Shown here one piece after another: positions 2,362-63,989 of a DNA stretch of 64,000 nt. The stretch comes from Ranitomeya imitator (Eukaryota). The notes beneath the pieces were generated by a model. The model was not told the DNA's origin. It searched no databases and was given only the letters and a program-made list of their open reading frames with translations. Both the position numbers and the translations under genes were made by a program. The stretch spans positions 270,878,001 through 270,942,000 of the forward strand of contig NC_091283.1 in assembly GCF_032444005.1 (NCBI RefSeq), given 5' to 3'. Position 1 is the first letter of the stretch. Every line of letters begins with the position of its first letter.

Positions 2362-2436
2362 CTGTGACGGGGGCGGTCTCTTCCCCCTCAGAGCCCCCGC
2401 TGACCCCTTCGCCAGATTCGGGTACTTCATTCTCAT
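2362..2436 (-). CDS. Linker exon of Tc1-HTH paralog B (DENEVPESGEGVSGGSEGEETAPVT)
   Basis: Acceptor atctttatatctag|at, donor acag|gtacga. 75 nt, phase 1-1. It mirrors the 66-nt exon at 18421-18486. Confidence 0.65.
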
Positions 2437-2472
2437 CTAGATATAAAGATAAATGTGGGATGAAGCAGCAAG

Positions 2473-3346
2473 ACAGCTCTGTATGTGACCGACGGCAGAA
2501 GTGTGAGCACAGCTCTGTATGTGACCGACAGAAGAAGTGTGAGCGCAGCTCTGTATGTGACCGACGGCAGAAGTGTGAGCGCAGCTGTGTATGTGACCGA
2601 CGGCAGAAGTGTGAGCGCAGCTGTGTATGTGACCGACGGCAGAAGTGTGAGCGCAGCTCTGTATGTGACCGACGGCAGAAGTGTGAGCACAGCTCTGTAT
2701 GTGACCGACGGCAGAAGTGTGAGCACAGCTCTGTATGTGACCGACGGCAGAAGTGTGAGCGCAGCTCTGTATGTGACCGACGGCAGAAGTGTGAGCGCAG
2801 CTGTGTATGTGACCGACGGCAGAAGTGTGAGCGCAGCTGTGTATGTGACCGACGGCAGAAGTGTGAGCGCAGCTGTGTATGTGACCGACGGCAGAAGTGT
2901 GAGCACAGCTCTGTATGTGACCGACGGCAGAAGTGTGAGCATAGCTCTGTATGTGACCGACGGCAGAAGTGTGAGCGCAGCTGTGTATGTGACCGACGGC
3001 AGAAGTGTGAGCGTAGCTGTGTATGTGACCGACGGCAGAAGTGTGAGCGCAGCTGTGTATGCGACCGACGGCAGAAGTGTGAGCGCAGCTGTGTATGTGA
3101 CCGACGGCAGAAGTGTGAGCGCAGCTGTGTATGTGACCGACGGCAGAAGTGTGAGCGCAGCTGTGTATGTGACCGACGGCAGAAATGTGAGCGCAGCTGT
3201 GTATGTGACCGACGGCAGAAGTGTGAGCGCAGCTGTGTATGTGACCGACGGCAGAAGTGTGAGCGCAGCTGTGTATGTGACCGACGGCAGAAGTGCGAGC
3301 ACAGCTGGGTATGAGACCGACGGCAGAAGTGCGAGCGCAGCTCTGT
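2473..3346. repeat. 36-bp minisatellite (gcagctgtgtatgtgaccgacggcagaagtgtgagc), about 24 copies, intronic
   Basis: Visible period; lies between the exons at 2362-2436 and 3427-3649. Confidence 0.95.
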
Positions 3347-3426
3347 GTGTGGACTTTTCCTATCCGCTGTAGGGCTAGTCAGTGATGTGTGTGGCGGGGC
3401 AGCGGCCATCATCCAGTCCTCGTTAC

Positions 3427-3649
3427 CTCTTCTCCGGAGCGTGCAGAGGATGCTGGCGATCTTGGTTGGCCGCCCGCTGCGGGGACGGGAGGAGACGGTG
3501 TTGAAGGTCTTCCACTTGTAGATGATCTGCCGGACGGTGGAGCGGTGAAGCTCGCACACTTTACTGATGGTCTTGTAACCCTTCCCGGCCTCGTGGGCCG
3601 CCACCACCTTCCTCCGCACCTCGTCAGAGATCTCCTTGGACCGGGGCAT
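3427..3649 (-). CDS. Tc1 transposase-derived HTH exon, paralog B
   Basis: MPRSKEISDEVRRKVVAAHEAGKGYKTISKVCELHRSTVRQIIYKWKTFNTVSSRPRSGRPTKIASILCTLRRR, then phase-1 donor agag|gtaacg. An acceptor (ctcccctccag|gaaccATG) lies just upstream. Confidence 0.75.
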
Positions 3650-3744
3650 GGTTCCTGGAGGGGAGCGCTGGAAGGGGGAACAGCTGCACCCAGGAAATCA
3701 GAGCAACTGTCCTCACAACAATTCCATGACCTGAGGAGACAACG

Positions 3745-3935: not shown

Positions 3936-3939
3936 TGGT

Positions 3940-4825
3940 GCGCGGGGCCACAAGAGCGCGGAGCAGGAAGGTGCTCAGGGCCACAAGAGCGCGGAGCAGG
4001 AAGGTGCGCGGGGCCACGAGAGCGAAGCAGGAAGGTGCATGCGGGCCCACAAGAGAGCCGAGCAGGAAGGTGCATGCGGGCCCACAAGAGAGCCGAGCAG
4101 GAAAGTGCACGGGCCCACAAGAGAGCAGAGCAGAAAGGTGTGCAGGGCCACAAGCACAGAGCAGGAAAGTGCACATGTGGACCGCAAGAGAGCGGAGCAG
4201 GAAGGTGCACACAGGGACACGAGAACGGAGTAGGAAGGTGTGCAGGGCCACAAGAGTGGAGCAGGAAGGTGCACATGTGGACCGCAAGAGAGCGGAGCAG
4301 GAAGGTGCACACAGGGACACGAGAGCGGAGCAGGAAGGTGCACGCGGGGACCACAAGAGAGCGGAGCAGGAAGGTGCACACGGGGACACGAGAGCGGAGC
4401 AGGAAGGTGCACGCGGGTACCACAAGAGAGCGGAGCAGGAAGGTGCACACGGGGACCACAAGAGAGCGGAGCAGGAAGGTGCACGCGGGGACCACAAGAG
4501 AGCGGAGCAGGAAGGTGCACGCGGGGACCACAAGAGAGCGGAGCAGGAAGGTGCACACGGGGACACGAGAGCGGAGCAGGAAGGTGAACGCGGGGACCAC
4601 AAGAGAGCGGAGCAGGAAGGTGCAAGCGAGGACCACAAGAGAGCGGAGCAGGAAGGTGCACGCGGGGACCACAAGAGAGCGGAGCAGGAAGGTGCAGGCG
4701 AGGACCAAAATAGAGCGGAGCAGGAAGGTGTGCAGGGGCCACAAGAGAGTGGAGCAGGAAATTGCGCGGGGCCAGCAGAGAGCAGAGCAGGAATTTGCGC
4801 GGGGCCAGCAGAGAGCGGCGCAGTA
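3940..4825. repeat. About 36-bp minisatellite (gagcggagcaggaaggtgcacgcggggaccacaaga)
   Basis: Visible tandem units with 33-37 bp variants. Confidence 0.9.
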
Positions 4826-4955
4826 AGCGCACGGAAAAATAACATAACCAAGAGCAGCTCCCGAGAGCGAGGGGTGGACAGATGTCCAGAGAAGCATCAT
4901 GGCAGATATCACTGTCACAGAAGGCTCCACAGCTCCAGGTCAGGGGTGTACTCAC

Positions 4956-5012
4956 TTCTCGCTCCGCAGCCTCTGCACATAATCCCCCGGAGTGACCCGT
5001 CCTGCTCTTCAT
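4956..5012 (-). other. Candidate upstream exon of Tc1-HTH paralog B (57 nt)
   Basis: Acceptor ttatctccag|atg, donor gagaa|gtgagt. Read phase 1-1 it gives DEEQDGSLRGIMCRGCGAR, in frame with the HTH exon; it could instead be UTR. Confidence 0.35.
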
Positions 5013-5099
5013 CTGGAGATAACTACAACGACCAGAGGTTTATTCCATCCCGATACCTCAGAGGGTGTACTCACTTCTCATAACTGTACAATGCTCAGT

Positions 5100-5305
5100 G
5101 GTCACACGACCTGTGTGTATAGATATATATATGTGTATGATCACAGGACCTGTGTGTATAGATATGTGTATGATCACAGGACCTGTGTGTATAGATATGT
5201 GTATGATCACATGACCTGTGTGTATAGATATATATATATGTGTATGATCACATGACCCGTGTGTATAGATATATATATATATATATATATATGTATGATC
5301 ACATT
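5100..5305. repeat. Short array of about 32-bp units plus (AT)n
   Basis: cacaggacctgtgtgtatagatatgtgtatgat repeated about 5 times. Confidence 0.8.
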
Positions 5306-5339
5306 ACAGAGAATTACACACGCAGCTGTCACTACCACA

Positions 5340-5600
5340 CACAATAACCCTCCTCACAGACCTGTAGAGCGGAGCCGCTCCGGAGGCGGCGGCGGCAGCT
5401 GCATGTGTGGAGACGAGTCCGGGGCTTAATCTGTTCCACAGGAGGCTGCTGGGACATGTAGTGCTCGCTGCGAGCCCACAGTAGCCGCCGCTCACTGCCA
5501 AGGTAAGAAATGACCTGCGGTGACGTCACGGTCACATGACCCTTGTGTGGGCGGGGCTATTACTATTGAATGGAGCGAAGGCTGCCCACGTGATGCAGAG
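5340..5600. promoter_or_regulatory. CpG-rich putative promoter
   Basis: CRE gtgacgtcac (about 5520-5529), E-box gtcacatgac, GC box gggcggggc. Candidate minus donor ctacag|gtctgt near 5361 and plus donor caag|gtaaga at 5503. Confidence 0.5.
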
Positions 5601-5604
5601 AAGC

Positions 5605-8600
5605 ATCTGTGTACAGGGCGGGGCTGTGTACGGACACCAGAGCGGGGGCGGGGCTGTGTACGGACCCAAGAGCGGGGGCGGGGCTGTGTACGGACACGAG
5701 AGCGGGGGGGCGGGGCTGTGTTCTTACACCAGAGCGGGGGCGAGGCTGTGTACGGACACCAGAGCGGGGGCGCGGCTGTGTACGGACACCAGAGCGGGGG
5801 CGCGGCTGTGTACGGACACCAGAGCGGGGGCGGGGCAGTGTACGGACACCAGAGCGGGGGCGGGGCAATGTACGGACACCAGAGCGGGGGCGGGGCTGTG
5901 TACGGACACCAGAGCGGGGGCGGAGCAGTGTACGGACACCAGAGCGGGGGCGGAGCAGTGTACGGACACCAGAGCGGGGGCGGGGCAATGTACGGACACC
6001 AGAGCGGGGGGCGGGGCTGTGTACGGACACCAGAGCGGGGGGCGGGGCTGTGTACAGACACCAGAGCGGGGGCGGGGCAGTGTACGGACACCAGAGCGGG
6101 GGGCGGGGCTGTGTACGGACACCAGAGAGGGGGCGGGGCTGTGTACTTACACCAGAGCGGGGGCCGGGGCTGTGTACGGGCACCAGAGAGGGGGGGGCGA
6201 AGCTGTATACTTACACCAGAGCAGGGGGCGGAGCTGTGTACGGGCACCAGAGCGGGGGGGCGGGGCTGTGTACTTGCACCAGAGCAGGGGGCGGGGCTGT
6301 GTACGGACACCAGAGTGGGGGGCGAGCCTGTGTACGGACACCAGAGTGGGGGGCGGGCCTGTGTACGGACACCAGAGTGGGGGGCGGGCCTGTGTACGGG
6401 CACCAGAGTGGGGGGCGGGGCTGTTTACGGGCACCAGAGCGGGGGCGGGGCTGTGTACTTACACCAGAGCACGGACACCAGAGCGGGGGGCGGGGCTGTG
6501 TACGGACACCAGAGCGGGGGCGGGCTGTGTACGGGCACCAGAGCGGGGGGCGGGGCTGTGTACGGGCACCAGAGAGGAGGCGGGGCTGTGTACGGACACC
6601 AGAGCGGGGGGCGGGGCTGTGTACGGACACCAGAGCGGGGGGCGGGGCTGTGTACAGTCACCAGAGTGGGGGGCGGGCCTGTGTACGGACACCAGAGCGG
6701 GGGGCGGGGTTGTGTACGGACACCAGAGCGGGGGGCGGGACTGTGTACGGGCACCAGAGTGGGGGGCGGGGCTGTTTACGGGCACCAGAGCGGGGGCGGG
6801 GCTGTGTACTTACACCAGAACACGGACACCAGAGCGGGGGGCGGGGCTGTGTACAGACACCAGAGCGGGGGCGGGCTGTGTATGGGCACCAGAGCGGGGG
6901 GCGGGGCTGTGTACGGGCACCAGAGCGGGGGGCGGGGCTGTGTACGGGCACCAGAGAGGAGGCGGGGCTGTGTACGGACACCAGAGCGGGGGGCGGGGCT
7001 GTGTACGGACACCAGAGCGGGGGGCGGGGCTGTGTACGGGCACCAGAGCGGGGGGCGGTGCAGTGTACGGGCACCAGAGCGGGGGCGGGGCAGTGTACGG
7101 ACACCAGAGCGGGGGCGGGGCTGTGTACGGACACCAGAGCGGGGGGCGGGGCTGTGTACGGACACCAGAGCGGGGGGCGGGGCTGTGTACGGGCACCAGA
7201 GAGGAGGTGGGGCTGTGTACGGACACCAGAGCGGGGGGCAGGGCTGTGTTCTTAAACCGAAGCAGGGGGCGGGGCTGTGTATGGACACCAGAGCGGGGGC
7301 GGGGACGTGTACGGACACCAGAGGGGGGGCGTGGCTGTGTACGGACACCAGAGCGGGGCAGTGTACGGACACCAGAGCGGGGGCGGGGCAGTGTACGGAC
7401 ACCAGAACGGGGCTGTGTACGGGCACCAGAGTGGGGGGCGGGGCTGTGTACAGACACCAGAGCGGGGGGCGGGGATGTGTACGGACACCAGAGCGGGGGG
7501 CGGGGCTGTGTACGGACACCAGAGCAGGGGGCGGGGCTGTGTACGGGCACCAGAGCGGGGGGCGGGGCTGTGTACGGGCCCCAGAGCGGGGGGGGGGGGG
7601 GGCCAAAGCTGTGTACTTACACCAGAGCGGGGGGGCGGGGCTGTGTACGGGCACCAGAGCGAGGGCAGGGCTGTGTACGGGCACCAGAGCGGGGGGCGGG
7701 GCTGTGTACGGGCACCAGAGCGGGGGCGGGGCTGTGTACGGGCACCAGAGCGGGGGGCGGGGCTGTGTACGGACACCAGAGCGGGGGGCGGGGCTGTGTA
7801 CGGACACCAGAGCGGGGCTGTGTATGGACACCAGAGCGGGGGCGGGGCTGTGTACTTACACCAGAGCAGGGGGCGTGGCTGTGTACAGGCACCAGAGCGG
7901 GGGCGGGGCTGTGTACGGACACCAGAGCGGGGGCGCGGCTGTGTACAGACACCAGAGCGGGGGGCGTGGCTGTGTACAGACACCAGAGCGGGGGCGGGGC
8001 AGTGTACGGACACCAGAGCGGGGCTGTGTACTTACACCAGAGTGGGGGCGGGTCTGTGTACTTACACCAGAGCGGGGGGCGTGGCTGTGTACAGACACCA
8101 GAGCGGGGGGCGTGGCTGTGTAAGGACACCAGAGCGAGGGGCGGGGCAGTGTACGGACACCAGAGCGGGAGCGGGGCAGTGTACGGACACCAGAGCGGGG
8201 GCGGGGCAGTGAACGGACACCAGAGCGGGGGCGGGGCAGTGTACGGACACCAGAGCGGGGGCGGGGCAGTGTACAGACACCAGAGCGGGGGCAGGGCAGT
8301 GTAGACACCAGAGCGAGGGCGGGGTAGTGTACGGACACCAGAGCGGGGGCGGGGCAGTGTAGACACCAGAGCGAGGGCGGGGTAGTGTACGGACACCAGA
8401 GCGGGGGCGGGGCAGTGTACAAACACCAGAGCGGGGGGCGGGGCTGTGTACGGACACCAGAGCGGGGGGCGGGGCAGTGTACAAACACCAGAGCAGGGGG
8501 CGTGGCTGTGTACAGGCACCAGAGCAGGGGCGGGGCTGTGTACGGACACCAGAGCGGGGGGCGGGGCTGTGTACGGGCACTAGAGCGGGGGGCGGGGCTG

Positions 8601-9280
8601 TGTACAGACACCAGAGCGGGGGGGGGGGGGGCTGTGTACTTACACCAGAGCGGGGGCGGGGCTGTGTACGGACACCAGAGCGGGGGCGCGGCTGTGTACG
8701 GACACCAGAGCGGGGGGCGTGGCTGTGTACGGACACCAGAGCGGGGGCGGGGCAGTGTACGGACACCAGAGCGGGGCTGTGTACTTACACCAGAGTGGGG
8801 GCGGGTCTGTGTACTTACACCAGAGCGGGGGCACAGCTGTGTAAGGACACCAGAGCGAGGGGCGGGGCAGTGTACGGACACCAGAGCGGGAGCGGGGCAG
8901 TGTACGGACACCAGAGCGGGGGCGGGGCAGTGAACGGACACCAGAGCGGGGGCGGGGCAGTGTACGGACACCACAGCGGGGGCGGGGCAGTGTACAGACA
9001 CCAGAGCGGGGGCGGGGCAGTGTAGACACCAGAGCGGGGGCGGGGCAGTGTAGACACCAGAGCGAGGGCGGGGTAGTGTACGGACACCAGAGCGGGGGCG
9101 GGACAGTGTAGACACCAGAGCGAGGGCGGGGTAGTGTACGGACACCAGAGCGGGGGCGGGGCAGTGTACAAACACCACAGGGGAGCTGTGTACTTACACT
9201 AGAGCGGGGGCGGGGCTGCCTACTTACACCAGAGCAGGGGGCAGGGCTGTGTACGGACACCAGAGCGGGGGCGGGGCTCT
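5605..9280. repeat. 30-31-bp G-rich minisatellite (gtgtacggacaccagagcgggggcggggct), about 120 copies
   Basis: Visible period; most units contain GGGGCGGGG. Confidence 0.95.
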
Positions 9281-14752: not shown

Positions 14753-14785
14753 GTGGGAATCGTGGTAGCAGGAAAACATGTGCAA

Positions 14786-17584: not shown

Positions 17585-17943
17585 TCAGCAGCCATGTTTT
17601 CTTTTCCGGTGTGCTCTCAGGCCGGCGGCGGTCTGGAAGGCTCTCCCGCACTCCTCGCACTGGTGCAGCGTCTTGTCCAGGTGCTGCGCCTGGTGACTTT
17701 CCAGATCGGTTTCTGTGGTGCAGCAGGTTCCGCAGATCTCGCAGCAGAGCATTACCTCCATGTGACGCTCTGCAGGTGGCGGGGCTGGTCCCAGCTCGCG
17801 GTTACAGTTCAGCTTTTCTTTCCGCCTTATTCTTTTTGTCGTCTTCCTTGTGACCGTGGAAACATCAGGGAGCGCAAGAGTCATGGAGGCTTTGTCCTCC
17901 CCCGCCGCTGCGACGCCGCCGCAGTCTGCACCATGGTCCGTAC
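17585..17943 (-). CDS. Terminal exon with two C2H2 zinc fingers
   Basis: ORF 17585-17950 contains CEICGTCCTTETDLESHQAQH and HQCEECGRAFQTAAGLRAHRKRKH; the acceptor ends at 17944. Confidence 0.8.
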
Positions 17944-19986
17944 CTGACAAACAAGGACCGCGACATCATCAGTATCCTGCAGCTCGAGGGGCGACAGGAG
18001 CAGCCATGGCAGACGCACAATTAAAGGGGTTGTCCCACAAACAAAACTACATTTTAATCAGCAAATCCTCAAAAATTCAGCAGTTCATCAATTGGATGTT
18101 TTGAGCATTTTTTTTAAACAGTCTTTGCTGTATCCCATGTATCCCGCTGGCCATGTAGAGATGCTGCAGGGTCGTGTACACCGCTTCTGGCGAGGGGGAG
18201 TCATAAGTGACCACAGTATTATAGGTGACACGGGCGGGGCACCCTCCAGCTGATCGCCAGGAGCGGAGTACGCGACCATGAGCTGCAGCATCTGCCGGGG
18301 CACAGCGCACAGGGAAGGTCAGCAGCAGCTTCATCGCCACAAAAAACACCAGTGAAGGAACTTCTTAGATTACCATCATCTATTGAATGGTCCCACTAAC
18401 ATTCTGCACAGATGACTTACCTGAGACTCGCGAGTCCTCGCTCTTCGCACTGACGCTCGCCTCTTCTATTTTTATGCTCTCATTTTCTAGATTAAAAGAA
18501 AAAAGGACACAAATAATAGAACATCACAGATGAAACTCCAGGAGGGTAGCAGAGTATTAATGCTACACAAACACTCTCTACACCCGAGCGCTCTCTGCTC
18601 TCGTACCAGACACCTGCGTGCTCTCCGCTCTCATACCTGAGACCAGCGTGCTCTCCGCTTTCGTACCAGACACCCGAGCGCTCTCTGCTCTCGTACTAGA
18701 CACCCGCGTGTTCTCTGCTCTCGTACTAGACACCCACGTGTTCTCCGCTCTCGTACCTGACACCCGTGTGCTCTCCTATCTCGTACCTGACACCAGCGTG
18801 CTCTCCGCTCTCGTACCAGACACCCGAGCGCTCTCTGCTCTCCTACTAGACACCCGAGCGCTCTCTGCTCTCGTACCTGACACCCGTGTGCTCTCTGCTC
18901 TCGTACCTGACACCCGTGTGCTCTCTGCTCTCGTACCTGACACCCGTGTGCTCTCCGCTCTCATACCTGACACCCGAGCGCTCTCTGCTCTCGTACCTGA
19001 CACCCGAGCGCTCTCTGCTCTCGTACCTGACACCCGTGTGCTCTCTGCTCTCGTACCTGACACCCGTGTGCTCTCTGCTCTCGTACCTGACACCCGTGTG
19101 CTCTCCGCTCTCATACCTGACACCCGAGCGCTCTCTGCTCTCGTACCTGACACCCGTGTGCTCTCTGCTCTCGTACCTGACACCCGAGCGCTCTCTGCTC
19201 TCGTACCTGACACTCGTGTGCTCTCTGCTCTCGTACCTGACAACTGCGTGCTCTCCGCTCTCATACCTGAGACCTGCGTGCTCTCCGCTCTCATACCTGA
19301 CACCCGTGTGCTCTCCTATCTCGTACCTGACACCAGCGTGCTCTCCGCTCTCGTACCAGACACCCGAGCGCTCTCTGCTCTCGTACCTGACACCCGAGCG
19401 CTCTCTGCTCTCGTACTAGACACCCGCGTGTTCTCTGCTCTCGTACTAGACACCCACGTGTTCTCCGCTCTCGTACCTGACACCAGCGTGCTCTCCGCTC
19501 TCGTACCTGACACCAGCGTGCTCTCCGCTCTCGTACCTGACACCAGCGTGCTCTCCGCTCTCGTACCAGACACCCGAGCGCTCTCTGCTCTCGTACTAGA
19601 CACCTGCGTGTTCTCCGCTCTCGTACCCGACACCTGTGTGCTCTCCTTCCCGTTGACTCTGACACCTTCTGTTGTAATTTTCTGTCCCTGACAACCTGTG
19701 GGTAATAGGACAGTGACATGAGTAGCCAATCAGCGGCCGTCCCTGGAGCAGCGGCAGTCTCCTTACCTCTCCGGAGGTGGGGCAGGACGGTGGCCAACTT
19801 GATGGGGCGCCCGCTCCGGGGAAGTGTGGAGATGGTGTTGAAGGCCTTCCACTTGTAGATGATCTTCCTCACAGTGGAGTGGTGCAGCTCACACATCTTA
19901 CTGATGGTTTTGTAGCCTTTCCCAGCTTCGTGAGCCTCCACCACCCTCCTCCGCACATCCTCCGAGAAGTCCTTGGACCGGGGCAT
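17585..19986 (-). CDS. Tc1-HTH + 2xC2H2 zinc-finger fusion gene (paralog A), predicted 214 aa; exons 19986-19767, 18486-18421, 17943-17585
   Basis: All GT-AG junctions are phase 1 (agag|gtaagg; atctag|aa; tcag|gtaagt; tttgtcag|gt). 220+66+359=645 nt is open to the stop. Fingers are CEICG...HQAQH and CEECG...HRKRKH. Confidence 0.7.
18590..19645. repeat. 30-bp minisatellite (ctcgtacctgacacccgtgtgctctctgct), intronic
   Basis: Visible period, about 35 copies. Confidence 0.95.
19767..19986 (-). CDS. Tc1 transposase-derived HTH exon, paralog A
   Basis: MPRSKDFSEDVRRRVVEAHEAGKGYKTISKMCELHHSTVRKIIYKWKAFNTISTLPRSGRPIKLATVLPHLRR, then a donor. There is no TIR or DDE domain around it. Confidence 0.78.
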
Positions 19987-24401: not shown

Positions 24402-25821
24402 ATGGTGTCCGCTGATCTGAGAGACGTGCTGAGCTGCTCCATCTGCCAGAACATGTACACAGACCCCATCACCCTGAGCTGCGGACACAACTTCTGCCGG
24501 GACTGCATCAATCACAAACTGGATTCACAAAAGTCCAAAGTTTACTTCTGTCCTGACTGCGGAGCAGAGTTCAGAGATCGCTCCAAGCTCTGCAAGAAGA
24601 TAGTCCTGGCCAAAGTAATAGATTGTCTCCCGTCTCTTCCAGAAGAGCAGTCTCCGCAACATGTCTTCTCAGAACCCACTATCAACCTGGATCACAGGAC
24701 ATGCTCAGTCCACAACAAGATCCTGGAATATTACTGCTTGGATGATTCCACCGGTGTCTGCATTAGCTGCTTTGTAGCTGGACACCACCAAGGACACAAC
24801 GTGAATTTCCTGCTTGAAGCCTTGGAAATGAAGAAGCAAAAGCTGGAAAAAGTTCTGATGGCGAGAGAGAAAGCCAACAGAGAAATTCAACATCTCGCGC
24901 AATGCAGAATAGGGGTGGAAGACAAAGCGGCAGAGATGGAAAAGAGAGTTAACTCCTTGTTCCGAGAACTCAGGAAGAAGCTGAATCACTTAGAAATGAC
25001 AGCTCTGGAGGTTATCTCCAAGCAAGAGAAGAAGGTCCTTCAAAGAATCGAGGACCTGATCAACCACCTCCAAGTCAAGAGGCAAGAATTGTCCAGGAAG
25101 ATCCGCGACATTGAAGAGATGTGCAAGACGAGTGATCATCTGACCGTCCTACACAAGGACTTCTTACGTGACTTAGGATAAGGAAACGTTGAGGACTGGG
25201 CCCCTGATGAGGTCTACAACATCAAGGACATTGACGACCATCAGATCTCTTTTTTTCTACAAACGGGTTTATCGGACATCAGCGCAGGCACAAACGTGTG
25301 GATCCATATGCTGAAACCTGTAGACTTCCTACTGGATGTGGACACAGTCTCTAACAACGTCACTATGTCCAGGGACCAGAGAGCAATTCAACTCTGGTAT
25401 AAACAACACAATCGTCCTGAAATGGCCGAGAGATTTGACTATTTTCAAGCTCTAAGCAGTAGAGTCTTCTCGTCAGGACGACATTACTGGGTGGTGGAAA
25501 TCGGCAAGTCAGGAAATCTGGGGATTGGAGTGTTATCCCAGTATAGACAGGAAAGGATATGTGTACATCGGGGAGAACGAGAAGTCCTGGTGCCTCAAAT
25601 ACGTGTCTTACCAGTGGTACGTGGAACATGACAGAAAAGCCACTCTGCTTCCCGACAAGGTCTCCTCCAATAGAATAGGGATCTATCTGGATTACGATGC
25701 CGGCCAGCTCTCCTATGATCTCACTGATCCCATCAGGTACTTGACTACCTTGAAGGCCACCTTCACTGAGCCCCTGCACGCTGCCTTTATGGTAATGGTG
25801 GAAGGATGTTTCAAAATTTAA
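24402..25821 (+). pseudogene. Intronless TRIM gene (RING, B-box, coiled coil, PRY/SPRY; TRIM25/39-like), disrupted
   Basis: RING CSIC...CGHNFCRDC...CPDC; B-box CSVH...YYC...CISC...H..H; B30.2 LLDVDT...FSSGRHYWVVE...LDYDAGQLS. In-frame TAA at 25179-25181 and a frameshift near 25530. Confidence 0.85.
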
Positions 25822-30165: not shown

Positions 30166-30425
30166 AACGCGGACATCACTATGCAGTTTCTAAGCTCTGA
30201 CATTACTCACTGATGCCGAAACCCGGAGGGGACGAAAAGGAAGCGTAACAACCGAGAAGTGCATGCCGCCCTATGGATGACTGACAAAAAAAAAAAAAAC
30301 TCTCAAAAGTTCAAAGAATTAGTCTTATTTTTATCTTGAGAAGCAGCCGGGATCCGGCGCGGCGGCACTTGTGGTGAAAGGACGCCTATACAATATCGTA
30401 CAAGCAGCAGCCATGTCTCCGGCCC

Positions 30426-40907: not shown

Positions 40908-40938
<31 letters not shown>

Positions 40939-41664
40939 ACGCAAACACGGAGAGAACATACAAACTCTTTGCAGATGTTGTCCTGGGTGGGATTAGAACC
41001 CAGGACCCCAGCGCTGCAAGGCTGCTGTGCTAACCACTGCGCCACCGTGCAACTACTATAATACTGCTCCTATGTACAAGTATGTACAAGAATATAACTA
41101 CTATAATATACTACAATATAACTTCTATAATACTGTTATTTATGAGTAAGCCCATACTGGCACTGCAAGTGGTGAGTGACTTGCCGACTGCTCCGGTTCT
41201 GGGTGGATGGGACTTGTGGAAGAAGTGTGGGAGAACGGCTGCTCCGTCTTCAGCGGCGGGGTGATGCAGGAGGTGTTGGTCCCGCTGGCGGACGGAGTCG
41301 GTGATGAAGAGTCGTAGTCGCACTCTTCAGTTTTGATGTGGACTATCCTGGAGTCTAATGTCGGAGATGAAAGTGAAGGCCGCTGGATTATCAGTGTGGG
41401 GGTCGCATCCTTCTTCAGGACCCTGCGCCCGTCCACCATCGTGTAGCTCTCCGGGGAGAAGTGGCAAGAACACATCCGGTACAAGGATTTTGATTTGTCA
41501 TCTAGGATTTTCTGGGAAATTTCCTCCACTTCTTGGAAGTTGAGTCCGGTCTGCAGGAGCCAAGTCTTGATGTGGTCGCTGTTGTCTGGGAATGGATGCA
41601 GTGTCACGCCGGGGACATCGCTCCTCCAGGTTATCGGACATTCCTTGACAATACAAGACGTCAT
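30426..41664 (-). CDS. 2xTHAP + KRAB-A-like + 6xC2H2 zinc-finger gene, predicted 790 aa; exons 41664-41185, 33589-32774, 31882-31769, 31553-31506, 31432-31291, 31198-30426
   Basis: Splice phases are consistent (0,0,0,0,1) and 480+816+114+48+142+773=2373 nt is open. It has two THAP signatures (CxxxxC..H.FP..W..CxxHF..A.PT), VPVKCDDIAMYFSTEEW, and six C2H2 fingers including a TGEKP linker. The first intron needs a GC donor. Confidence 0.75.
31920..32735. repeat. 36-bp minisatellite (ggggtgcagcgtccatatggccgtgtatatagtccg), intronic
   Basis: Visible period. Confidence 0.95.
32774..33589 (-). CDS. Second THAP-domain exon
   Basis: Acceptor tttcctccgcag|ggt; RCIVTDCP...VHVFP...WL...MCADHFSP...LKPDAVPTIF; donor atg|gtaagt. 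Confidence 0.85.
34413..35175. mobile_element. Palindromic Penelope-like insertion nested in the MITE
   Basis: 14-bp TSD tgactcgagtataa (34399-34412, 35176-35189); inverted arms 34413-34602 and 34853-35043; hammerhead in the spacer. Confidence 0.75.
34791..34831 (-). ncRNA. Minimal type I hammerhead ribozyme, U3:A8 variant
   Basis: Minus strand reads cccct-TTGAAAA-a-gc-tattaac-gc-GAAA-cgcgcg-TC-agggg. Stem III is a perfect palindrome (ACGCGCGT) and the cleavage triplet is GUC. Confidence 0.7.
36115..40596 (+). mobile_element. Sola2-like DNA transposon derivative with about 1.95-kb inverted arms
   Basis: GGG...CCC termini with 4-bp TSD AACT (36111-36114, 40597-40600). Transposase motifs IGFSKFC, MDFAENY, YFSDG..AQYK and TSHGKSPCDGIGGTAKR. 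Arms at 36115-38067 and 38647-40596. The superfamily call is from recalled motif and terminus rules. Confidence 0.75.
38071..39594 (+). pseudogene. 5'-truncated, frameshifted DDE transposase
   Basis: ORFs 38194-39132 and 39154-39594, plus an upstream stretch with an in-frame stop near 38153. Confidence 0.8.
40779..41050 (-). mobile_element. tRNA-derived SINE (V-SINE-like core) with L2 3' tail
   Basis: A box tggcgcagtgg, B box ggttctaatcc, core gtttgcgtgggtttcctccggg. The tail matches the L2 3' end at 14786-14850. Apparent TSD aacta. Confidence 0.85.
41185..41664 (-). CDS. First coding exon, THAP domain 1
   Basis: Acceptor gtttcttgcag|gATG; MTSCIVKECP...TLHPFP...WL...MCSCHFSPESY...KKDATPTL; inferred donor tcg|gcaagt. 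Confidence 0.8.
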
Positions 41665-54855: not shown

Positions 54856-56094
54856 GGGAGGAAATCTGTGTCCAAATCCAAACATAGAGAGTGTGCCATC
54901 TGTACGGAACCTCTTCCGGATGGACATAAAAAGAAATTGTGCAGCATCTGCATTCAACAATTAATTGAGGACGAGACCCCTGACCTTACGTCTACTCTTA
55001 GGGATCTGGTTAGACAGGAGGTCAGAGATTCCATAAGGTCTCAGAAGACAGTTTCAAAAAAGAGGAAGGAGATATTATCCCCAGCCTCGGATGTGGATTC
55101 AGACACGGGTGGTGTGAGTTCGGATTCTCATCCGTCATCATCATCAGAGGACGTGGAATCTAGTCGAACCTGTCTATCACTGGACAGGGTTAACCGCTTA
55201 GTCAAAGCTGTCAATAGCACTATGGGCATTGAGGAGACCCAGGCGGAATGTTCCATCCAGGATATAATGTTTAAAGGCATAGATCGCAAATCCAGAAGAG
55301 TATTTCCCGTAGTTGATAAAGTTAAGTCTCTGATTACGAGAGAATGGAAAAAACCCGAAAGGAAGGGGTCTCTCCCACCAGCGTTCAAAAGAAGATATCC
55401 CTTTGAGGAAGAAGCTTCTTCCTCCTGGGACAAGGTCCCGAAACTGGATGCGGCGGTGGCTAAAGCATGTAAAAAGACGTCTCTTCCGTTTGAGGATCTG
55501 GGGAGCCTAAAAGACCCGCTTGATAGGAAAGCTGAGGTATTCCTTAAAGGAGCTTGGGAAACATCAGCGGGTTCCCTGAGACCAGCGATTGCGGCCACCT
55601 GCACTGCCCGGTCGTTGATGGTATGGCTGGGTAATCTAGAAGACCAGCTCAAGGATAAGGTTCCTAGGAGCAAGATCCTATCTTCTATGTCTATGATTCA
55701 GGATGCAGCAGCCTTCCTTGCGGATGCGTCAGCCGATTCTGTTAGGCTAGCGGCAAGGTCATCAGCACTGTCCAATGCGGCCCGTAGGGCTCTTTGGATA
55801 AAATGCTGGCCAGGAGACTTGCAGGCCAAATCAAAACTATGTGGCATCCCCTGTGAGGGGGTTCATTTGTTTGGCCCAGTGCTGGATGAGCTTCTAGAAA
55901 AAGCAGGTGACAGTAAGAAGCGATTCCCTCTCCTAACAAGACCCTTCTATAGACGGGACTATAATAGAGGAGGGCCATATCGCCGAAGATCGGACAGGGA
56001 TTCAAATAGAGAATCGACCAGATACAACTCTTACAGGAGAAGAGGTAGAGGTTACATGTTTAACTCTTCTAGAGACTCTAAAAAGCATCAATGA
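54856..56094 (+). CDS. DIRS ORF1 (gag-like; C4 finger and LAP2alpha-like domain)
   Basis: ECAIC...LCSIC; WDKVPKLDAAVAK...LKDPLDRKAE; AADSVRLAAR...RRALW. The start is probably supplied by an upstream exon. Confidence 0.85.
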   Translation, partial: GRKSVSKSKHRECAICTEPLPDGHKKKLCSICIQQLIEDETPDLTSTLRDLVRQEVRDSIRSQKTVSKKRKEILSPASDVDSDTGGVSSDSHPSSSSEDVESSRTCLSLDRVNRLVKAVNSTMGIEETQAECSIQDIMFKGIDRKSRRVFPVVDKVKSLITREWKKPERKGSLPPAFKRRYPFEEEASSSWDKVPKLDAAVAKACKKTSLPFEDLGSLKDPLDRKAEVFLKGAWETSAGSLRPAIAATCTARSLMVWLGNLEDQLKDKVPRSKILSSMSMIQDAAAFLADASADSVRLAARSSALSNAARRALWIKCWPGDLQAKSKLCGIPCEGVHLFGPVLDELLEKAGDSKKRFPLLTRPFYRRDYNRGGPYRRRSDRDSNRESTRYNSYRRRGRGYMFNSSRDSKKHQ

Positions 56095-57991
56095 CTGGCG
56101 GCCCAGGTGGGCGGTAGGCTTTTGGCCTTCTACCCAGCCTGGGTAAAAATCACCAATAGTCCATGGATACTCAGTATCATTAAAGAGGGGCTAAAGTTCC
56201 AATTCCACCATACCCCCCTGGAAAAATTCAAATTAACTCCTATCCGTTCTTCTCCCGCAGAACAGTTGGCGTTGGAGTCAGAGGTTCGAGATCTCCAAAA
56301 AAAGGGGGTTCTCGTTAAAGTACCTACGGAGGAACAAGGTACGGGGTTTTACTCCCCTTTATTCCTGGTAAAGAAGCCAGATGGATCTTATCGTACCATC
56401 ATCAATCTGAAGGGCCTGAATGTATTCCTGCTGGTCCCATCCTTTAAAATGGAATCTGTGAAGTCGGCAATAAAGCTTCTTTTTCACAATTGCTTCATGG
56501 TTGTCTTAGATCTGAAAGACGCCTATTATCATGTCCCGATACATGCAACTCATCAGCGCTTTCTCAGGGTGGCGATTTCTCTTGCCGGCACAGTGGAGCA
56601 CTTTCAATATCGGGCACTCCCCTTTGGTGTTGCAGTCACACCTCGGGTGTTCACTAAGATTATGGTGGAGGTTATGGCACACCTTCATGAGCAAGATATA
56701 CTAATAATTCCCTATCTGGATGATTTATTGATCGTTGGGCGCTCAGAGTTACACTGTAAAGAACAGTTGGGGAAAGTGATGGCGGCGTTACACAACTTAG
56801 GATGGATTATCAATCTCAAAAAGTCGCGTCTTCAGCCCTCAACATCACAGCAGTTCTTGGGTCTTACTGTGGATTCAGCTCAGCAGGAATGTCGCCTGCC
56901 AGACTCAAAAGTTGATACTATTCACCGGCTGGCCTCCAGAGCAATTAGTAATCCCGTAGTTTCCCTAAGAAGTGCTATGTCACTCTTAGGTTCACTTACT
57001 TCTTGTTTTCCGGCGGTGATGTGGGCACAGTTTCACTCCAGGGCTCTGCAATGGGATGTTCTGCATAATTTTCGGCGTCTGGGCGCTAACCTTGACAAAA
57101 ATTTTTCCCTATCTGTAGAGGCCACGGGTTCACTAAGGTGGTGGACACACATCCCTAATCTGCGTAAAGGGGTACCTTGGACATATCAGATATCACGGGT
57201 AATAACAACGGATGCTAGCCCCACGGGGTGGGGAGCACACTGGGAGGGCAATTGCATTCAGGGTCTGTGGTCCCATTCTGAGCGAGACACGTCCTCCAAT
57301 CTGAAGGAATTGATGGCGGTGGAACGCGCCTTAGATAGGTTCCTTATACCTCTGCAGGGTAGACATGTTAGGATACTCTCTGACAACCAGGTGACCGTTG
57401 CTTATGTGAACCACCAAGGAGGTACACGGTCTAGGTCATTAATGAACGTTACAAATCATATCTTTCAGATGGCCGAAAATCACCTGCTCTCCCTTACGGC
57501 CCTTCATATAAAGGGAAATCTAAATACCATGGCCGATTACTTAAGCCGCAACGGAGCTCAAACAAGGGGACTGGTCTCTAAAACCGGCTGTCTTCAATCA
57601 GATCGTGCGGTTGTGGGGATGTCCAGAGATAGATCTGTTTGCCAGTCGAGGAAACAAGAAACTCCATCAATTCTGTTCCCTAGACCCAAGGGACAACCCG
57701 TACGCAGTCGACGCTTTTCTGATCCCCTGGAATTTCAATCTCGCCTACGCTTTCCCTCCTCTGAATCTCATTCCTATAGTTCTGAGGAAAATTCGGGAAG
57801 ACGGAGCCCGAGTGGTTTTAATAGCCCCATTCTGGCCCAGAAGGTCTTGGTTCCCATGGTTGAGAAGCATGTCCATTTCCCAACCATGGATCCTCCCAGA
57901 AATACCGGACCTCCTTTCCCAGGGTCCAGTCTTCCATCCACGAGTAACCAACTTGCACCTGACAGCGTGGAACTTGAGAGGTCACTTCTGA
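56095..57991 (+). CDS. DIRS ORF2: reverse transcriptase, RNase H, DNA adenine methyltransferase-like; +1 frameshift near 57550
   Basis: LDLKDAYYH, LPFG, YLDD, TDAS, ELMAV, SDN and ADYLSR. The GDWSL...DLFAS...YAFPP methyltransferase segment is displaced one frame (57605-57991). Confidence 0.9.
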
Positions 57992-59001
57992 AAGGAAAGG
58001 GATTCTCCCAGAATCTTGTAAATACTCTACTTAAAAGTAGGAAAGCCTCCACGACTAGCATTTATGTTAGGGTATGGAGGAAGTTCCTATCAAGTTCAGG
58101 AGCACAAATCGATCAAAAACCTGATATTGCTCAGATCCTAGAATTTTTACAGAAGGGCTTAGAGTTAGGCTTAGCCACCAGCACCCTTAGAGTTCAGGTT
58201 TCAGCTCTAGGGGCACTATATAATTCCAACATAGCCAGTAATCACTGGATAACAAGGTTTTTCAAAGCGGTCACCAGATCCAGGCCGGTTGTTAAACAGA
58301 GAATAGTTCCATGGGACCTAAATCTTGTGCTCTCAGCTCTAACACAAGCTCCGTTCGAGCCTATTGACTCTGTCCCGATCAAGATCCTGTCGGTCAAAAC
58401 AGCCCTCTTAGTTGCTCTTACATCGGCAAGAAGGGTTAGTGATCTTCAGGCATTATCCAGGCAACGTCCATATATGCAATTTTTGGAAGATAGAGTGGTG
58501 ATGAGTCCTGACCCTCTTTATCTTCCAAAGGTTGCCTCAAAATTTCATAGATCCCAGGAGGTGATCCTACCTTCATTTTGTCCTAATCCCTCTGACAATA
58601 AGGAGCAGAGATTTCATTGTTTGGACGTACGTAGGTGCCTTCTTAAATACATTTCAGTAACAGACACCTGGAAAAAAGACCACGCATTATTTTTATCCTA
58701 CCAGGGGGTTAGGAAGGGACTTAGAGTATCAAAAAATACCCTAGCCAGATGGATTAGGGAGGCGATATCTCTTGCTTATACCGCAGGTGGCGTGGAGATT
58801 CCAGAAGGTATAAAGGCTCACTCCACTCGTGCGGTAGCCACATCCTGGGCTGAGAGAGCAGAAGTATCGATTGAGGACATCTGTAAGGCGGCCACATGGT
58901 CTTCTCCATCCACCTTTCTTAGACACTATAGATTAGATCTAGGTGGCTCCTCCGACCTCACGTTTGGGAGAAGGGTGCTGGAAGCTATTATCCCTCCCTA
59001 G
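57619..59001 (+). CDS. DIRS ORF3 tyrosine recombinase
   Basis: Catalytic residues in LTSARRVSDL, KAHSTR and TFLRHY; the N-terminal part overlaps the MT frame. Confidence 0.9.
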   Translation: MSRDRSVCQSRKQETPSILFPRPKGQPVRSRRFSDPLEFQSRLRFPSSESHSYSSEENSGRRSPSGFNSPILAQKVLVPMVEKHVHFPTMDPPRNTGPPFPGSSLPSTSNQLAPDSVELERSLLKGKGFSQNLVNTLLKSRKASTTSIYVRVWRKFLSSSGAQIDQKPDIAQILEFLQKGLELGLATSTLRVQVSALGALYNSNIASNHWITRFFKAVTRSRPVVKQRIVPWDLNLVLSALTQAPFEPIDSVPIKILSVKTALLVALTSARRVSDLQALSRQRPYMQFLEDRVVMSPDPLYLPKVASKFHRSQEVILPSFCPNPSDNKEQRFHCLDVRRCLLKYISVTDTWKKDHALFLSYQGVRKGLRVSKNTLARWIREAISLAYTAGGVEIPEGIKAHSTRAVATSWAERAEVSIEDICKAATWSSPSTFLRHYRLDLGGSSDLTFGRRVLEAIIPP

Positions 59002-60822: not shown

Positions 60823-60923
60823 TTAAAATATCAGGGAGGTGAGACACAGATCAGTCCTGTGTGGAATGAGTTCAGGAGGGGGAAGGTTGCAGGGGCTCAT
60901 TGTCTAAACAAGCTAGGTCAATA

Positions 60924-60997
60924 TAATAATAATCTTTATTTTTATATAGCGCTAACATATTCCGCAGCGCTTTACACAGTTTTGCACACATTATCAT
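60924..60997 (-). mobile_element. Truncated 3' tail of the same SINE family
   Basis: Near identical to 40781-40850. Confidence 0.75.
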
Positions 60998-61897
60998 TGC
61001 ATATGTCATTAGCATATTAGCAAAGAATACAGTATTCATTGTTTCCACCGATGTTACAGATGATGATGGGTCTTCCGGCATCCATCCTTTTATATAATAG
61101 AAGGGAACGTGTGGGATGAGATGGCGACTCTTGCCAGTCTCGTGACCACCATCACAAAGATCTGAGCTCCTTCGTATTCATATTGGGTAGCACAGAAGAT
61201 GCCATTATTCGGGCTGGTCAAAGTGGTGGTGGCCGACCCAGGCCGTCAACACGAGAGGAGACTCTGGTCAGCCATCCTCAGTACAGCAGTGATCTGAGGA
61301 GCAAATCATCCACCACCACATACAGTTCTTGGTTCCCGGCCTAATGAAGATCATTAAAGAGGACCTAGGTCCATGTCAATAGTGGGAAATTTTTGCTCTT
61401 TTCCCGCTCTCTTAGTATTACTTTTTTTTTGCCGTTTTTATAAACTCCGCCATGTGTTTCCAGAGAAGAGGACACTTTATATTTAGTGCTATATTTTCTG
61501 CTCTTTAGCAAGATGACGTTACTCAATGGGTAATTATGCAGAGCAGTCTATAGACACGCCCCCGAGGATCCTGTCAGAGAGTTCCTCCTCCCTGGAGCCA
61601 TATGCCGGATTTAAGGAAAGCTGCAATAAAACTGAATTCTCAGGTGAACAAAAACGGAGTGAGGGTGCAATTTTAGATAGAATGGCGGAGATCTGTCTAA
61701 TATGGTCCATTGTTAGGTATCTTATGATCAGAGATTTGCCTTTGTATAAACTCTGTCACATAGAAGGAAATCGCTCGTGATGATAAATAATTGTCTCCCC
61801 CCCCCCCCCCATAAATCTTGAGTATGTACAAGACTTTACGCGTAAATGGAGGTATTGATGAAATAACCTGGTCCTTGTCATTTTTCAGGCTGGAGAC

Positions 61898-63989
61898 ATG
61901 CCGAAATGTCTTGTGAAGGGCTGTCAACATTCCTCCGGGAGGAAGAGCAGCATCCCCGGAGTGACTCTACACCCGTTTCCCAAAGACTTGGCCATCATTA
62001 AAAAATGGCTCCTGCAGACTAACCAGGACTTCGGGGACCTCGACTTGTTTGCTCAGGGAATTCTGCAAGGACAGTTGGGCGTTTCTCGAATCTGTTCTGT
62101 GCATTTTGCTCCCGAATGTTACCGCTTAGTTGGCTCAGAAAAGTTGCTTTTGGATGGAGCGATTCCAACCAGATTCCCGGATTTAGATAAACCAACAACA
62201 AGAACAGAGGCTGCCGTCAATCCTGCCTTACAAAACCTTATCCTGCCTAAAGGCTTGTGGGCCAACAACGTCTCTGTGGCTTCGAGTATGGCTCCATGGG
62301 GATCGGACATTAAAAGTAGTCAAGCCAATATGGCAGCCACCAATACCATGGGTATTGGCAAATCCTCCCATCCCACCAAGTCCCGTGTTAATTTACCAGG
62401 CATCGTGCTGAGCTCTGAGATGGGTGCATTGCACACTGACACGTCTTCTGGGAAGGTCCACAGAGCCGTCCAGTGGCCGGAATATGAGCACAATGTGAAC
62501 GGAGAAGCATGGAAAGTTCTGCACGACCATTACTACCGCGTGCCGTCTGGCACCAAGTATCAGGACATAAACCGGTACTCGCTCTTGACGGACTACATGT
62601 CGGGGTATGGAATTATGAGCTACTCTGGAGAATCTTATTGGGAGAATGAACTGGTGCGTTGGCTGCTGGTCTGGTTTTGGAGATGTTTGGTGCTTTTGCC
62701 TTTGTCACCTTCTGCCATGTGTTCTTCCCCGCAGTTCTCAATGTTGCAGTGCGTGGCAAGTTTTGTCACGGTGAACCGAAATAACAACATAAAAACGGCA
62801 AGAATCCTAAACCAAGCCCTGGATATCATCTCCACGTTGTCTGAGGAGGTGAGCCTTTCTGCATCTTTGAGGGAAAAATTGGAAAAATTTGGGTTTTAAA
62901 GGTTTATGTCGAGAGGTTTTCCCCTCCCATTACTAGAGATGAGTGGATCCCTGTGCACAGCCATGGTCCAGGTCAGGGCTAGGCCAATTTCGTGAGCTCC
63001 TGAGTTCATTTGCCAGCCAATTGTGACGGCTATCAGGTGGTCTTGTCATGAGCTGTGCCTGCGATCCCTGAGGCTATGGTAATTTGGGCAGCTACTGTAC
63101 ACGACCAGAGAACACTGACCTGGACCAGGGTTGTGCACAGCCATCTTCTCACCCCTACCTAGATAAGTGCTGGACTGCTGAGGACCTTACTGCTACCACC
63201 CCTCATTTATTAAATCAGGGGGTCACAGTTCCACTCTGCACATAGAATTAACGGGAACTTTGAATGGAGGGTCTGTCAACCATGTGCCCTTCTGCTCTAT
63301 ATAGTGTCTACAGGCCATACGTGCATGCTCCAAGGACCCTGTAGTGAAAGTCTGCTGAAGGTCCCCATTGCTGCCATGTTGGAGACCCAACCATAGGCTG
63401 GGCTTCATGAGAGACCATGATTTTAGGCATATTCTTAGCCTCGGTTGGAAGGATGTTGAAGCATATTCACCATGAGCTGTGGACCCTCGCTGCACGGGAG
63501 TCTGTGAGTTCATTGTAACTTCACCCCTCCCACCACTGGAGGCGCTGTTTCTTCTCAGTGATGTGAGAATTGTGCTACAAACCTGTGGAAACTGTAGAAA
63601 GGCTCCTGGTGCTGTGATTGGAGACTGGATGCATTGGGGTCTGTCGGCGCCCGATAAGTCTCTAGATTTCCCCGTTCCTCAGTGTTCACATCTTGTTTTC
63701 AGGAATGGGTGATCGTGAACAAGAACTCCATCAATAAAGGTCTGCAGGAGCTGACTGGAGAGGTGAGCGGTTGTCCGGTTTCATCCTTGATGTCAGACAT
63801 TCGCTGGCTGCTCATATAAAAAATACCGTTGTGTTTCCCAGTTTCCCGTTAAGTGTGACGATGTAGCGGTATACTTCACGAAGGATGAGTGGAGCTATAT
63901 AGATCAGCACAGGGCGGACTACCAGGACTTTCTTACTGACAATAAACCAGCGAATCACACGTGGGAAGTCCCCGAACACTGGGATTCTG
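61898..63989 (+). CDS. THAP + KRAB-A-like gene, partial; exons 61898-62653, 62735-62848, 63703-63762, 63842-63989; continues beyond the window
   Basis: THAP MPKCLVKGC...TLHPFP...KKWL...ICSVHF...AIPTRF; 114-nt ARILNQALDIISTLSEE exon; FPVKCDDVAVYFTKDEW. Splice phases 0,0,0,1 match the minus-strand paralog. Acceptor tcatttttcag 9 nt before the ATG. Confidence 0.8.

Follow-up and report, generated by a model that had tools for sequence, protein, structure and literature searches.

The 64,000-nucleotide stretch of the Ranitomeya imitator genome analyzed here (RefSeq assembly GCF_032444005.1, contig NC_091283.1, positions 270,878,001 to 270,942,000 of the forward strand; hereafter, the window) contains four genes whose proteins are headed by a DNA-binding domain derived from a transposase, and on the basis of Pfam matches these genes fall into two families. 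We refer to them as G1 (2362-3649), G2 (17585-19986), G3 (30426-41664), and G4 (61898-63989). In Family 1, consisting of G1 and G2, the helix-turn-helix (HTH) of a Tc1 transposase is joined to host exons, which in G2 end with two C2H2 fingers. In Family 2, consisting of G3 and G4, THAP domains precede a KRAB-A-like box, followed in G3 by an array of C2H2 fingers. The genes occupy a fixed locus, are conserved and spliced, and combine a transposase DNA-binding domain with host fingers (and, in Family 2, with KRAB), while carrying no catalytic domain. In G2 and G3, the transposase and host domains lie in one spliced frame, as seen in annotated proteins for G2 and in RNA contigs for G3. We consider it likely that the window represents a conserved frog gene cluster in which two families of transcription factors are domesticated fusions of transposase and host parts and neither family is an active transposon.

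Structure of the four genes

Both Family 1 genes are on the minus strand. Pfam places HTH_SB, the HTH of Sleeping Beauty transposase, at the head of the open reading frames (ORFs) that begin at 3649 (E = 1.3e-19) and 19986 (E = 2.3e-18). G2 (19986-17585) is complete, and G1 (3649-2360) is incomplete within the window. Exon 1 of G2 (19767-19986) supplies the ATG and the Tc1 PAI HTH and is identical to the N-terminus of two R. imitator proteins, P0010 and P0011. The gene record of P0011 is on chromosome CM064360.1 (GCA_032444005.1), where coordinates exceed those of the window by 270,878,000. Exon 2 (19627-19695) was placed by peptide mapping of these proteins, and its donor lies inside the first unit of a 30-bp minisatellite of 35 units (18580-19645; Tandem Repeats Finder, TRF) that makes up most of intron 2. 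In isoform X1 (P0011), exon 2 is extended to 19537, adding three in-frame repeat units of 10 amino acids (aa). Both annotated exon 2 donors fall in units of this repeat, reading AG/GTACGA-like; since the minisatellite is partly exonised and holds the donors in its units, a change in repeat number could alter the G2 protein. Exon 3 (18421-18486) encodes an acidic Ser-rich linker; its acceptor is canonical, and its donor reads GTAAGT. Exon 4 (17585-17943) encodes a basic stretch, two C2H2 fingers (Pfam zf-C2H2, E = 2.3e-7 over 17950-17588), and the stop; it is identical to P0010/P0011 and shares 79% identity with Phyllobates P0001 and 70% with Anomaloglossus P0002. The four coding exons sum to 711 nucleotides (nt), or 237 codons, which is the length of P0010, and the annotated proteins P0010 and P0011 are reproduced exactly. 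Residues 1 to 51 of P0010 match the structure of the Sleeping Beauty PAI subdomain (PDB 2M8E, E = 1.7e-5).

Exon 1 of G1 (3428-3649) encodes, in 74 codons, the ATG, a Sleeping-Beauty-type Tc1 PAI HTH, and the GRP-type motif PRSGRP, with an AG acceptor immediately 5' of the ATG and a GTAAC donor immediately 3' of the conserved block. Its HTH is 99% identical to that of R. variabilis P0007. The middle exon (2360-2437) encodes an acidic Ser/Gly-rich linker of 26 codons, which is 73% identical to aa 75-100 of Anomaloglossus P0002 (tblastn) and is also found in R. variabilis P0007 and Phyllobates P0005. Intron 1 is filled by a 36-bp minisatellite of 24 units (2474-3351; TRF), at which R. variabilis has merely ~4 to 5 units (blastn of R. 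variabilis locus L005 against the window). The HTH exon, the entire intron 1, and the middle exon together form one unbroken ORF of 446 aa (2309-3649, minus strand). Retention of intron 1 would yield a Cys/His/Arg-rich repeat protein, and the ORF may be a chance product, since every frame is open in the 36-bp array. The big minisatellite arrays upstream of G1, with units of 36 and 30 bp (3941-9278), occupy the same place in R. variabilis (L005:1950-9713) at 82 to 86% identity and therefore predate the split between the two species.

The HTH exons of G1 and G2 are 81% identical over just 243 bp, their flanks do not align, and in both the ATG is directly preceded by an AG acceptor and the conserved block directly followed by a GTAA donor. 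At both genes, similarity to Tc1 transposases stops at about residue 65 to 70, where the splice donor follows, and thus the PAI subdomain and PRSGRP motif alone are retained. No DDE region follows either HTH, and Pfam finds neither HTH_Tnp_Tc3_2 nor a DDE domain there, which argues against an autonomous Tc1 transposon. The possibility that the HTH exons are ordinary Tc1 remnants was also rejected, given that the copies share the exon alone with matching splice sites and that the exons are conserved and spliced in other species. Pfam shows no recognised repressor domain in the HTH-ZnF proteins, neither KRAB nor any other known effector.

For Family 2, Pfam recognises three THAP-bearing ORFs, two on the minus strand (41724-41140 and 33739-32738) and one on the plus strand (61898-62899), with E values from 2e-9 to 3e-11. 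In translation, all three domains keep the C-x4-C and C-x2-H of the C2CH zinc signature and an A-x-PT box corresponding to the C-terminal AVPTIF-like box of THAP, the Pfam match spans the full 87-position profile, and a PDB match to THAP1 was obtained among them. Spliced models of G3 and G4 were assessed exon by exon and by phase arithmetic. For G3, alone among the four genes, RNA contigs were compared as well: contigs of four runs from four studies, labelled just "RNA?" or "?", were placed on 29000-34900, and these contigs skip introns.

G3 (41664-30426, minus strand) has six exons, and its protein combines a tandem pair of THAP domains with a KRAB box and six C2H2 fingers. Exon 1 (41185-41664) carries the ATG, the first THAP (E = 1e-10), and a linker, with 67% identity to aa 1-162 of Dendropsophus P0069. 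Intron 1 is of the GC-AG kind, and an RNA contig ending at 33590 carries on with 30 letters that exactly match 41186-41215. Exon 2 (32774-33589) encodes the second THAP (E = 2.2e-9) and, after a long linker, the first Leu-rich motif (68% identity to P0069 aa 145-442), and contigs of four runs span 32772-33590. Exon 3 (31769-31882), in phase 0 and with RNA joints on both sides, encodes a Leu-rich motif ending in LLTGD (89% identity to P0069 aa 440-477), which is typical of frog ZNF genes; Pfam gave no match for the Leu-rich (LLTGE-type) exons. Exon 4 (31506-31553) is a micro-exon of 48 nt, or 16 codons, in phase 0, with canonical sites and RNA joints in three runs. The KRAB-A-like box is encoded by exon 5 (31291-31432), with a Pfam KRAB score of 27.2 bits over 31447-31280 against a cut-off of 20.4. 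Exon 6 (30426-31198), unbroken in contig X5 record 14 (30274-31198), encodes an acidic region, the six fingers, and the stop. Here Pfam finds C2H2 in the ORF at 31259-30429 (zf-C2H2, E = 3.2e-24), and identity to P0069 aa 540-801 is 81%.

The RNA joints of G3 fall at 31198/31291 (four runs) and at 31429/31503, 31553/31769, and 31880/32772 (three runs each). All have CT..AC ends, corresponding to GT-AG introns on the minus strand; the joint 31429/31503 was read with the cut three places further on, and cuts were set at canonical sites. The six exons sum to 2373 nt (790 codons plus stop), are in phase throughout, and are colinear with the 801-aa P0069 in five blocks of 67 to 89% identity (tblastn). 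In the same RNA data, a 35-bp tandem repeat with adjoining sequence (33762-34515, also 40597-40786) reached a summed contig depth of thousands to tens of thousands in 4/4 runs, versus a depth of 10 to 40 over G3 exons; this repeat is either abundantly transcribed or very high-copy. Intron 1 of G3 also harbors an element with two inverted duplicate arms (37124-39594). The two arms code for portions of one shared pair of ORFs, of 312 aa and 146 aa, and Pfam assigned the 312-aa ORF to no family.

In G4 (61898-63989, plus strand), exon 1 (61898-62848) carries a THAP (E = 3.2e-11) that is connected by a linker to a Leu-rich motif. The ATG follows a phase-0 acceptor at a distance of 9 nt, and the donor reads GAG/GTGAGC. 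This exon aligns with aa 273-602 of Bufo P0060 and aa 1-323 of Dendropsophus P0061 at ~44% identity. Exon 2 (63703-63762), predicted from splice contexts and frame alone, would encode a second Leu-rich motif ending in LTGE. Exon 3 (63842-63989) encodes a KRAB-A-like box (24.8 bits over 63791-64000; cut-off 20.4) with 71% identity to P0060 aa 617-671 and ends at the donor TCTG/GTAAGA at 63989. G4 is colinear with both P0060 and P0061 (tblastn).

The window, which contains zero N, is rich in repeats. Minisatellites account for ~43% of its length (27.4 of 64 kb), in 14 arrays with units of 22 to 50 bp (TRF). Also present are the inverted-arm element in G3, a DIRS element, the remnant of a Tc1 element, and a fragment weakly similar to GIY-YIG. 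The DIRS-type retroelement (54868-59001, plus strand) has two long ORFs that are still open, one encoding a 408-aa gag-like protein (Pfam LAP2alpha, E = 1.9e-14) and the other a 964-aa protein with reverse transcriptase, RNase H, and tyrosine recombinase; this element may be young. The ORF of the Tc1 remnant, at 26.3 kb, gave no Pfam match. The sole other host (cellular) gene besides G1 to G4 is a truncated TRIM gene (24402-25821, plus strand) encoding RING, B-box, and coiled coil, then PRY/SPRY beyond a stop and a frameshift (Pfam). By comparison with an intact 516-aa Bufo TRIM, the in-frame stop lies at 25179-25181 and the frameshift at ~25532. The annotated TRIM product is a truncated protein of 259 aa, with no transposase domain at its head.

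An initial annotation of the window had proposed that every apparently intact host gene in it starts with a DNA-transposon domain. This holds: the TRIM gene was considered as a refutation and rejected, since it is broken. The same annotation had counted two Tc1 HTH and two THAP, which is correct at the level of genes (two with HTH_SB, two with THAP), but the THAP domains number three, with a tandem pair in G3. Its statement that these heads are joined to C2H2 or KRAB-like modules is accurate for G2, for G3, and for the KRAB of G4; the finger exons of G1 and G4 are not in the window. The exon ends that it had given at 2362 and 63989 were accurate to the base, and its tandem-THAP model of G3 was borne out by RNA joints and phases, although the 48-nt exon had not been predicted. 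Finally, the locus had been described as saturated with transposable elements (TEs); the DIRS element, Tc1 remnant, and other elements are present, but a locus that is 43% minisatellite is more aptly called minisatellite rich than TE saturated.

Relatives and selection

A search with the finger exon returned Phyllobates and Anomaloglossus proteins bearing HTH_SB and C2H2. A search with the Phyllobates protein recovered the HTH_SB+C2H2 layout in R. imitator, R. variabilis, Dendrobates, Bufo bufo, B. gargarizans, Leptodactylus, Hyla, Engystomops, and Eleutherodactylus, while Xenopus, Gastrophryne, and fish matches in the same search were plain Tc1 transposases (those from Xenopus and fish carry PF01498). 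Altogether, 11 hyloid frog species besides R. imitator have Family 1 orthologues with open frames and the same exon layout, and the family is already present in RefSeq annotation under uninformative names. The nearest non-fusion relatives of the Family 1 HTH are Tc1 transposases, at 62 to 72% identity. In a tree of HTH sequences, the fusion genes all group in a single clade separate from transposases (support 85/89), within which the G2 type is monophyletic among dendrobatids (support 95/90), a topology that fits a single capture followed by tandem duplication in the poison-frog lineage.

The ratio of nonsynonymous to synonymous substitution rates (dN/dS) in the HTH exon was 0.036 between G1 and R. 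variabilis (8 synonymous versus 1 nonsynonymous; Fisher p = 6e-5) and 0.30 to 0.36 in deeper comparisons, and that of the two-finger region was 0.39 to 0.49 against Bufo. These ratios point to purifying selection on the Family 1 HTH exon. The finger exons of R. imitator G2 (17588-17773) and of the R. variabilis G1 orthologue (L005:11067-11252) differ at 3/186 nt, with a synonymous rate (dS) of 0.026, versus a dS of 0.53 for the HTH exons of the same pair. This difference suggests gene conversion or recent exchange of the finger exon between tandem paralogues.

Relatives of Family 2 occur across Anura. When the G4 ORF was used in an exhaustive search without profiles, 322 relatives were found at E ≤ 1e-3. 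The twenty of these that were named are all anuran (14 species, 11 genera), and they include members from Bufo, Dendropsophus, Nanorana, Spea, Pelobates, Lithobates, Rhinophrynus, Xenopus, Hyperolius, Discoglossus, and Bombina, with znf684.L (P0067) and LOC108701160 (P0073) among those from Xenopus laevis. Among the first ten named relatives, Pfam found C2H2 arrays in seven, two THAP stretches in seven, and a KRAB match in two.

Several observations weigh against the interpretation of the window as a cluster of domesticated genes. The two-finger C2H2 exon of G1 was looked for in 1-2360 and not found. Colinearity of G1 with its compact R. variabilis orthologue (the P0007 gene, 1.26 kb) breaks at ~2180, and no R. 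imitator G1-type protein occurs among the matches to the Phyllobates protein; G1 may thus be broken or interrupted in R. imitator. G4 continues past the right edge of the window, with its finger exon outside, and no credible first THAP exon was found for it on the plus strand between 41.7 and 61.9 kb at E ≤ 10, although its Bufo and Dendropsophus orthologues have such an extra exon. The KRAB boxes of G3 and G4 are divergent, matching 33 and 21 of 42 profile positions, respectively, with the MLE-type motif altered (Pfam), and TRIM28 recruitment is therefore uncertain and cannot be assumed. The apparent limit of Family 1 to Hyloidea rests on a word-seeded, length-limited search. Lastly, the functions proposed for either family, TE silencing included, are hypothetical.

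Some of these points would suit a contrary explanation, namely, that the genes are non-functional, being either transposon fragments spliced by chance (noise or annotation artefacts) or decaying pseudogenes. The last exon missing from G1 within the window and the first THAP exon missing from G4 are what such decay might leave, and the surroundings, with many unstable minisatellites, one of them partly exonised, and a broken neighbouring TRIM gene, would be in keeping with it. However, Family 1 keeps its open frames and exon layout in the 11 other hyloid species, as does Family 2 across Anura, there is a clear synonymous excess, and G3 is canonically spliced in four independent studies. Conservation and dN/dS largely refute this explanation for G2 and G3, and we consider it highly improbable for the cluster.

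Origin of the fusions and their possible roles

The arrangement of the two families can be followed in other frogs. In Bufo bufo, a span of ~160 kb takes in a THAP-THAP-ZNF gene, an HTH-ZnF gene, and an intact TRIM gene, the last lying 6.5 kb downstream of the THAP-THAP-ZNF gene and on the opposite strand. Members of both families in B. gargarizans are recorded on contigs of equal length (335,404 bp) and so are probably on one scaffold. Dendropsophus orthologues of G3 and G4 are head-to-head and 6.4 kb apart; R. imitator has the same arrangement, with the gap widened to 20 kb through minisatellites and the DIRS element. In Eleutherodactylus coqui, the HTH-ZnF gene is inside a neurexophilin intron, apart from the one THAP relative located, and linkage is therefore not universal. 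Judging from the species in which it is retained, the linkage of HTH-ZnF genes with THAP-KRAB-ZNF genes is old. The suggestion in the initial annotation of a ZNF-cluster-like region is thus sustained, with host-transposase fusion genes whose linkage is kept in Bufo bufo and Dendropsophus; in E. coqui, the HTH-ZnF gene and the one THAP relative located are on different chromosomes.

These comparisons suggest that two captures, widely separated in age and each followed by local duplication, gave rise to the four genes, because THAP fusions are found in all anuran lineages sampled, whereas Tc1-HTH fusions form one hyloid-only clade among the matches. For Family 1, we envisage a cryptic splice donor ~74 codons into a Sleeping-Beauty-type Tc1 transposase gene, which would have joined the PAI HTH and GRP-type motif to linker exons and a two-finger C2H2 exon. 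The product is a small protein of ~190 to 270 aa that has DNA-binding modules of two sorts but lacks a catalytic domain. This capture would have happened once, before the hyloid divergence, with a tandem duplication later in the poison-frog lineage. For Family 2, one or two THAP domains of the P/Kolobok type stand before a KRAB-A-like box and six C2H2 fingers in an anuran-wide family, represented here by a head-to-head pair.

The initial annotation had instead supposed that transposase domains are repeatedly recruited at this locus. Taken further, the locus would be a hot spot at which transposase DNA-binding exons are captured time and again onto ZNF or KRAB acceptors, and the outcome would be adaptive silencing of DNA transposons. 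Unrelated Tc1 HTH and THAP do head neighbouring genes here, as they do within the ~160 kb in Bufo bufo, and transposase DNA-binding domains are reported to have often been captured by KRAB genes (Cosby et al., bioRxiv 10.1101/2020.05.07.082677; Science 2021). A further case in favor comes from Bufo, where P0021 and P0022 share the middle and two-finger exons of Family 1 but have a second, unrelated Tc1-like head with PAI and RED (Pfam PAX and HTH_Tnp_Tc3_2, as precomputed). The finger exon of P0022 is one residue off that of Bufo locus L004, and P0022 therefore comes from a paralogue. Recruitment has thus recurred to the extent of this extra head, but G1 to G4 themselves reduce to two old captures plus duplication, and no young, lineage-specific capture is visible in the window. 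The hot spot also has to contend with the lack of a recognised repressor domain in the HTH-ZnF proteins and with the residence of the E. coqui HTH-ZnF gene elsewhere, in the neurexophilin intron. We therefore regard such a hot spot as unlikely and favor two old captures.

A more elaborate scenario gives the two-finger exon a part of its own, as a reusable, gene-converted acceptor for differing Tc1-type heads, with the cluster as an evolving anti-transposon toolkit. It would account for the Sleeping-Beauty-type PAI head in all hyloids sampled and for the unrelated PAI+RED head in the Bufo paralogue. The proteins would then be DNA-binding-only competitors of whichever Tc1 families are active, co-regulated with the adjoining, older THAP-KRAB repressors. 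We put this scenario forward as speculation and think it unlikely.

Under the interpretation that we prefer, a cluster of domesticated fusion genes from two captures, members of both families would be sequence-specific DNA binders. The THAP-KRAB-ZNF proteins encoded by G3 and G4, with DNA-binding modules of two sorts, would most likely be repressors. The HTH-ZnF proteins encoded by G1 and G2 would most likely act as regulators at sites derived from Tc1 inverted repeats or, alternatively, as competitors of transposase at such sites.

Comparison with known transposase-host fusions

The closest counterparts of Family 2 are the KKOLOD genes of Cosby et al. In their Table S3, KKOLOD1 is given as an anuran fusion of 200 to 350 million years of age, with a P/Kolobok THAP, KRAB, and four C2H2 fingers and a dN/dS of 0.11. 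KKOLOD2 and KKOLOD3 are given as Xenopus fusions, with similar fusions in turtles and other reptiles, and dN/dS for KKOLOD1 to KKOLOD3 ranges from 0.10 to 0.14. Like these, G3, G4, and their relatives, X. laevis znf684.L (P0067) and LOC108701160 (P0073) included, combine a P/Kolobok-type THAP, KRAB, and a C2H2 array in one spliced anuran gene. They differ in that G3 has six fingers, not four, and in that a tandem THAP pair is absent from the description in the table. None of the KKOLOD gene identifiers listed there (100495066, 108698464, 108797006, and 108701152) mapped to Family 2 matches; the likeness is at the level of architecture. P0073 and P0067 share one X. laevis contig and have nearby accession numbers, and LOC108701160 (P0073) is numbered near 108701152 of KKOLOD2, which is suggestive only. 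On the basis of domain architecture, G3 and G4 belong to this already catalogued class of anuran THAP+KRAB+C2H2 fusions.

Family 1 is best compared with KRABINER and other KRAB-Tc1/mariner fusions (Cosby et al. 2021), in which, likewise, the DNA-binding part of a Tc1/mariner transposase is spliced to host exons and a transcription-factor-like product is under purifying selection. In contrast to those, G1 and G2 use solely the PAI of a DD34E, Sleeping-Beauty-like Tc1, with no KRAB and no catalytic domain, and the host part consists of two C2H2 fingers. Parts 1 and 2 of the 3 parts of Table S3 list no hyloid fusion of Tc1 HTH with C2H2 and no hyloid species, and a word search of all the supplementary files returned neither "Bufo" nor "HTH_Tnp_Tc3". 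No published description of a hyloid HTH-ZnF family was found in the literature searched.

Table S3 lists PAX genes, too, as Tc1/mariner derived, the paired domain being related to PAI plus RED of Tc1-like transposases. As in Family 1, a Tc1-type HTH has been reused in PAX as the DNA-binding domain of a transcription factor beside a second, unrelated module. PAX genes, however, are metazoan-wide, have kept both PAI and RED, and have a homeodomain as partner, whereas Family 1 is found in hyloid frogs alone among the matches, has PAI only, and has C2H2 as partner.

A different parallel is offered by the KP repressor of the P element, a truncated transposase that keeps just the DNA-binding end. 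Similar to G1 and G2, repressors of the KP type have a DNA-binding end without a catalytic domain and could occupy transposon ends and block transposition, which is one way in which G1 and G2 might act. Unlike G1 and G2, they are encoded by internally deleted transposon copies rather than by conserved host genes that are spliced and fixed in position.

It is accepted that new transcription factors can arise in vertebrates by transposase capture, and the kind of system described here is thus known. What the present analysis adds is a conserved Tc1-PAI+C2H2 family of which we found no description, hyloid-only among the matches and without a known effector domain, together with its old linkage to THAP-KRAB-ZNF genes and a second Tc1-type head on the same finger exons in Bufo. 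If the HTH-ZnF proteins do bind Tc1 inverted repeats, they would offer a naturally occurring case in which to test, in a vertebrate, domesticated transposase fragments reduced to DNA binding as regulators or inhibitors.

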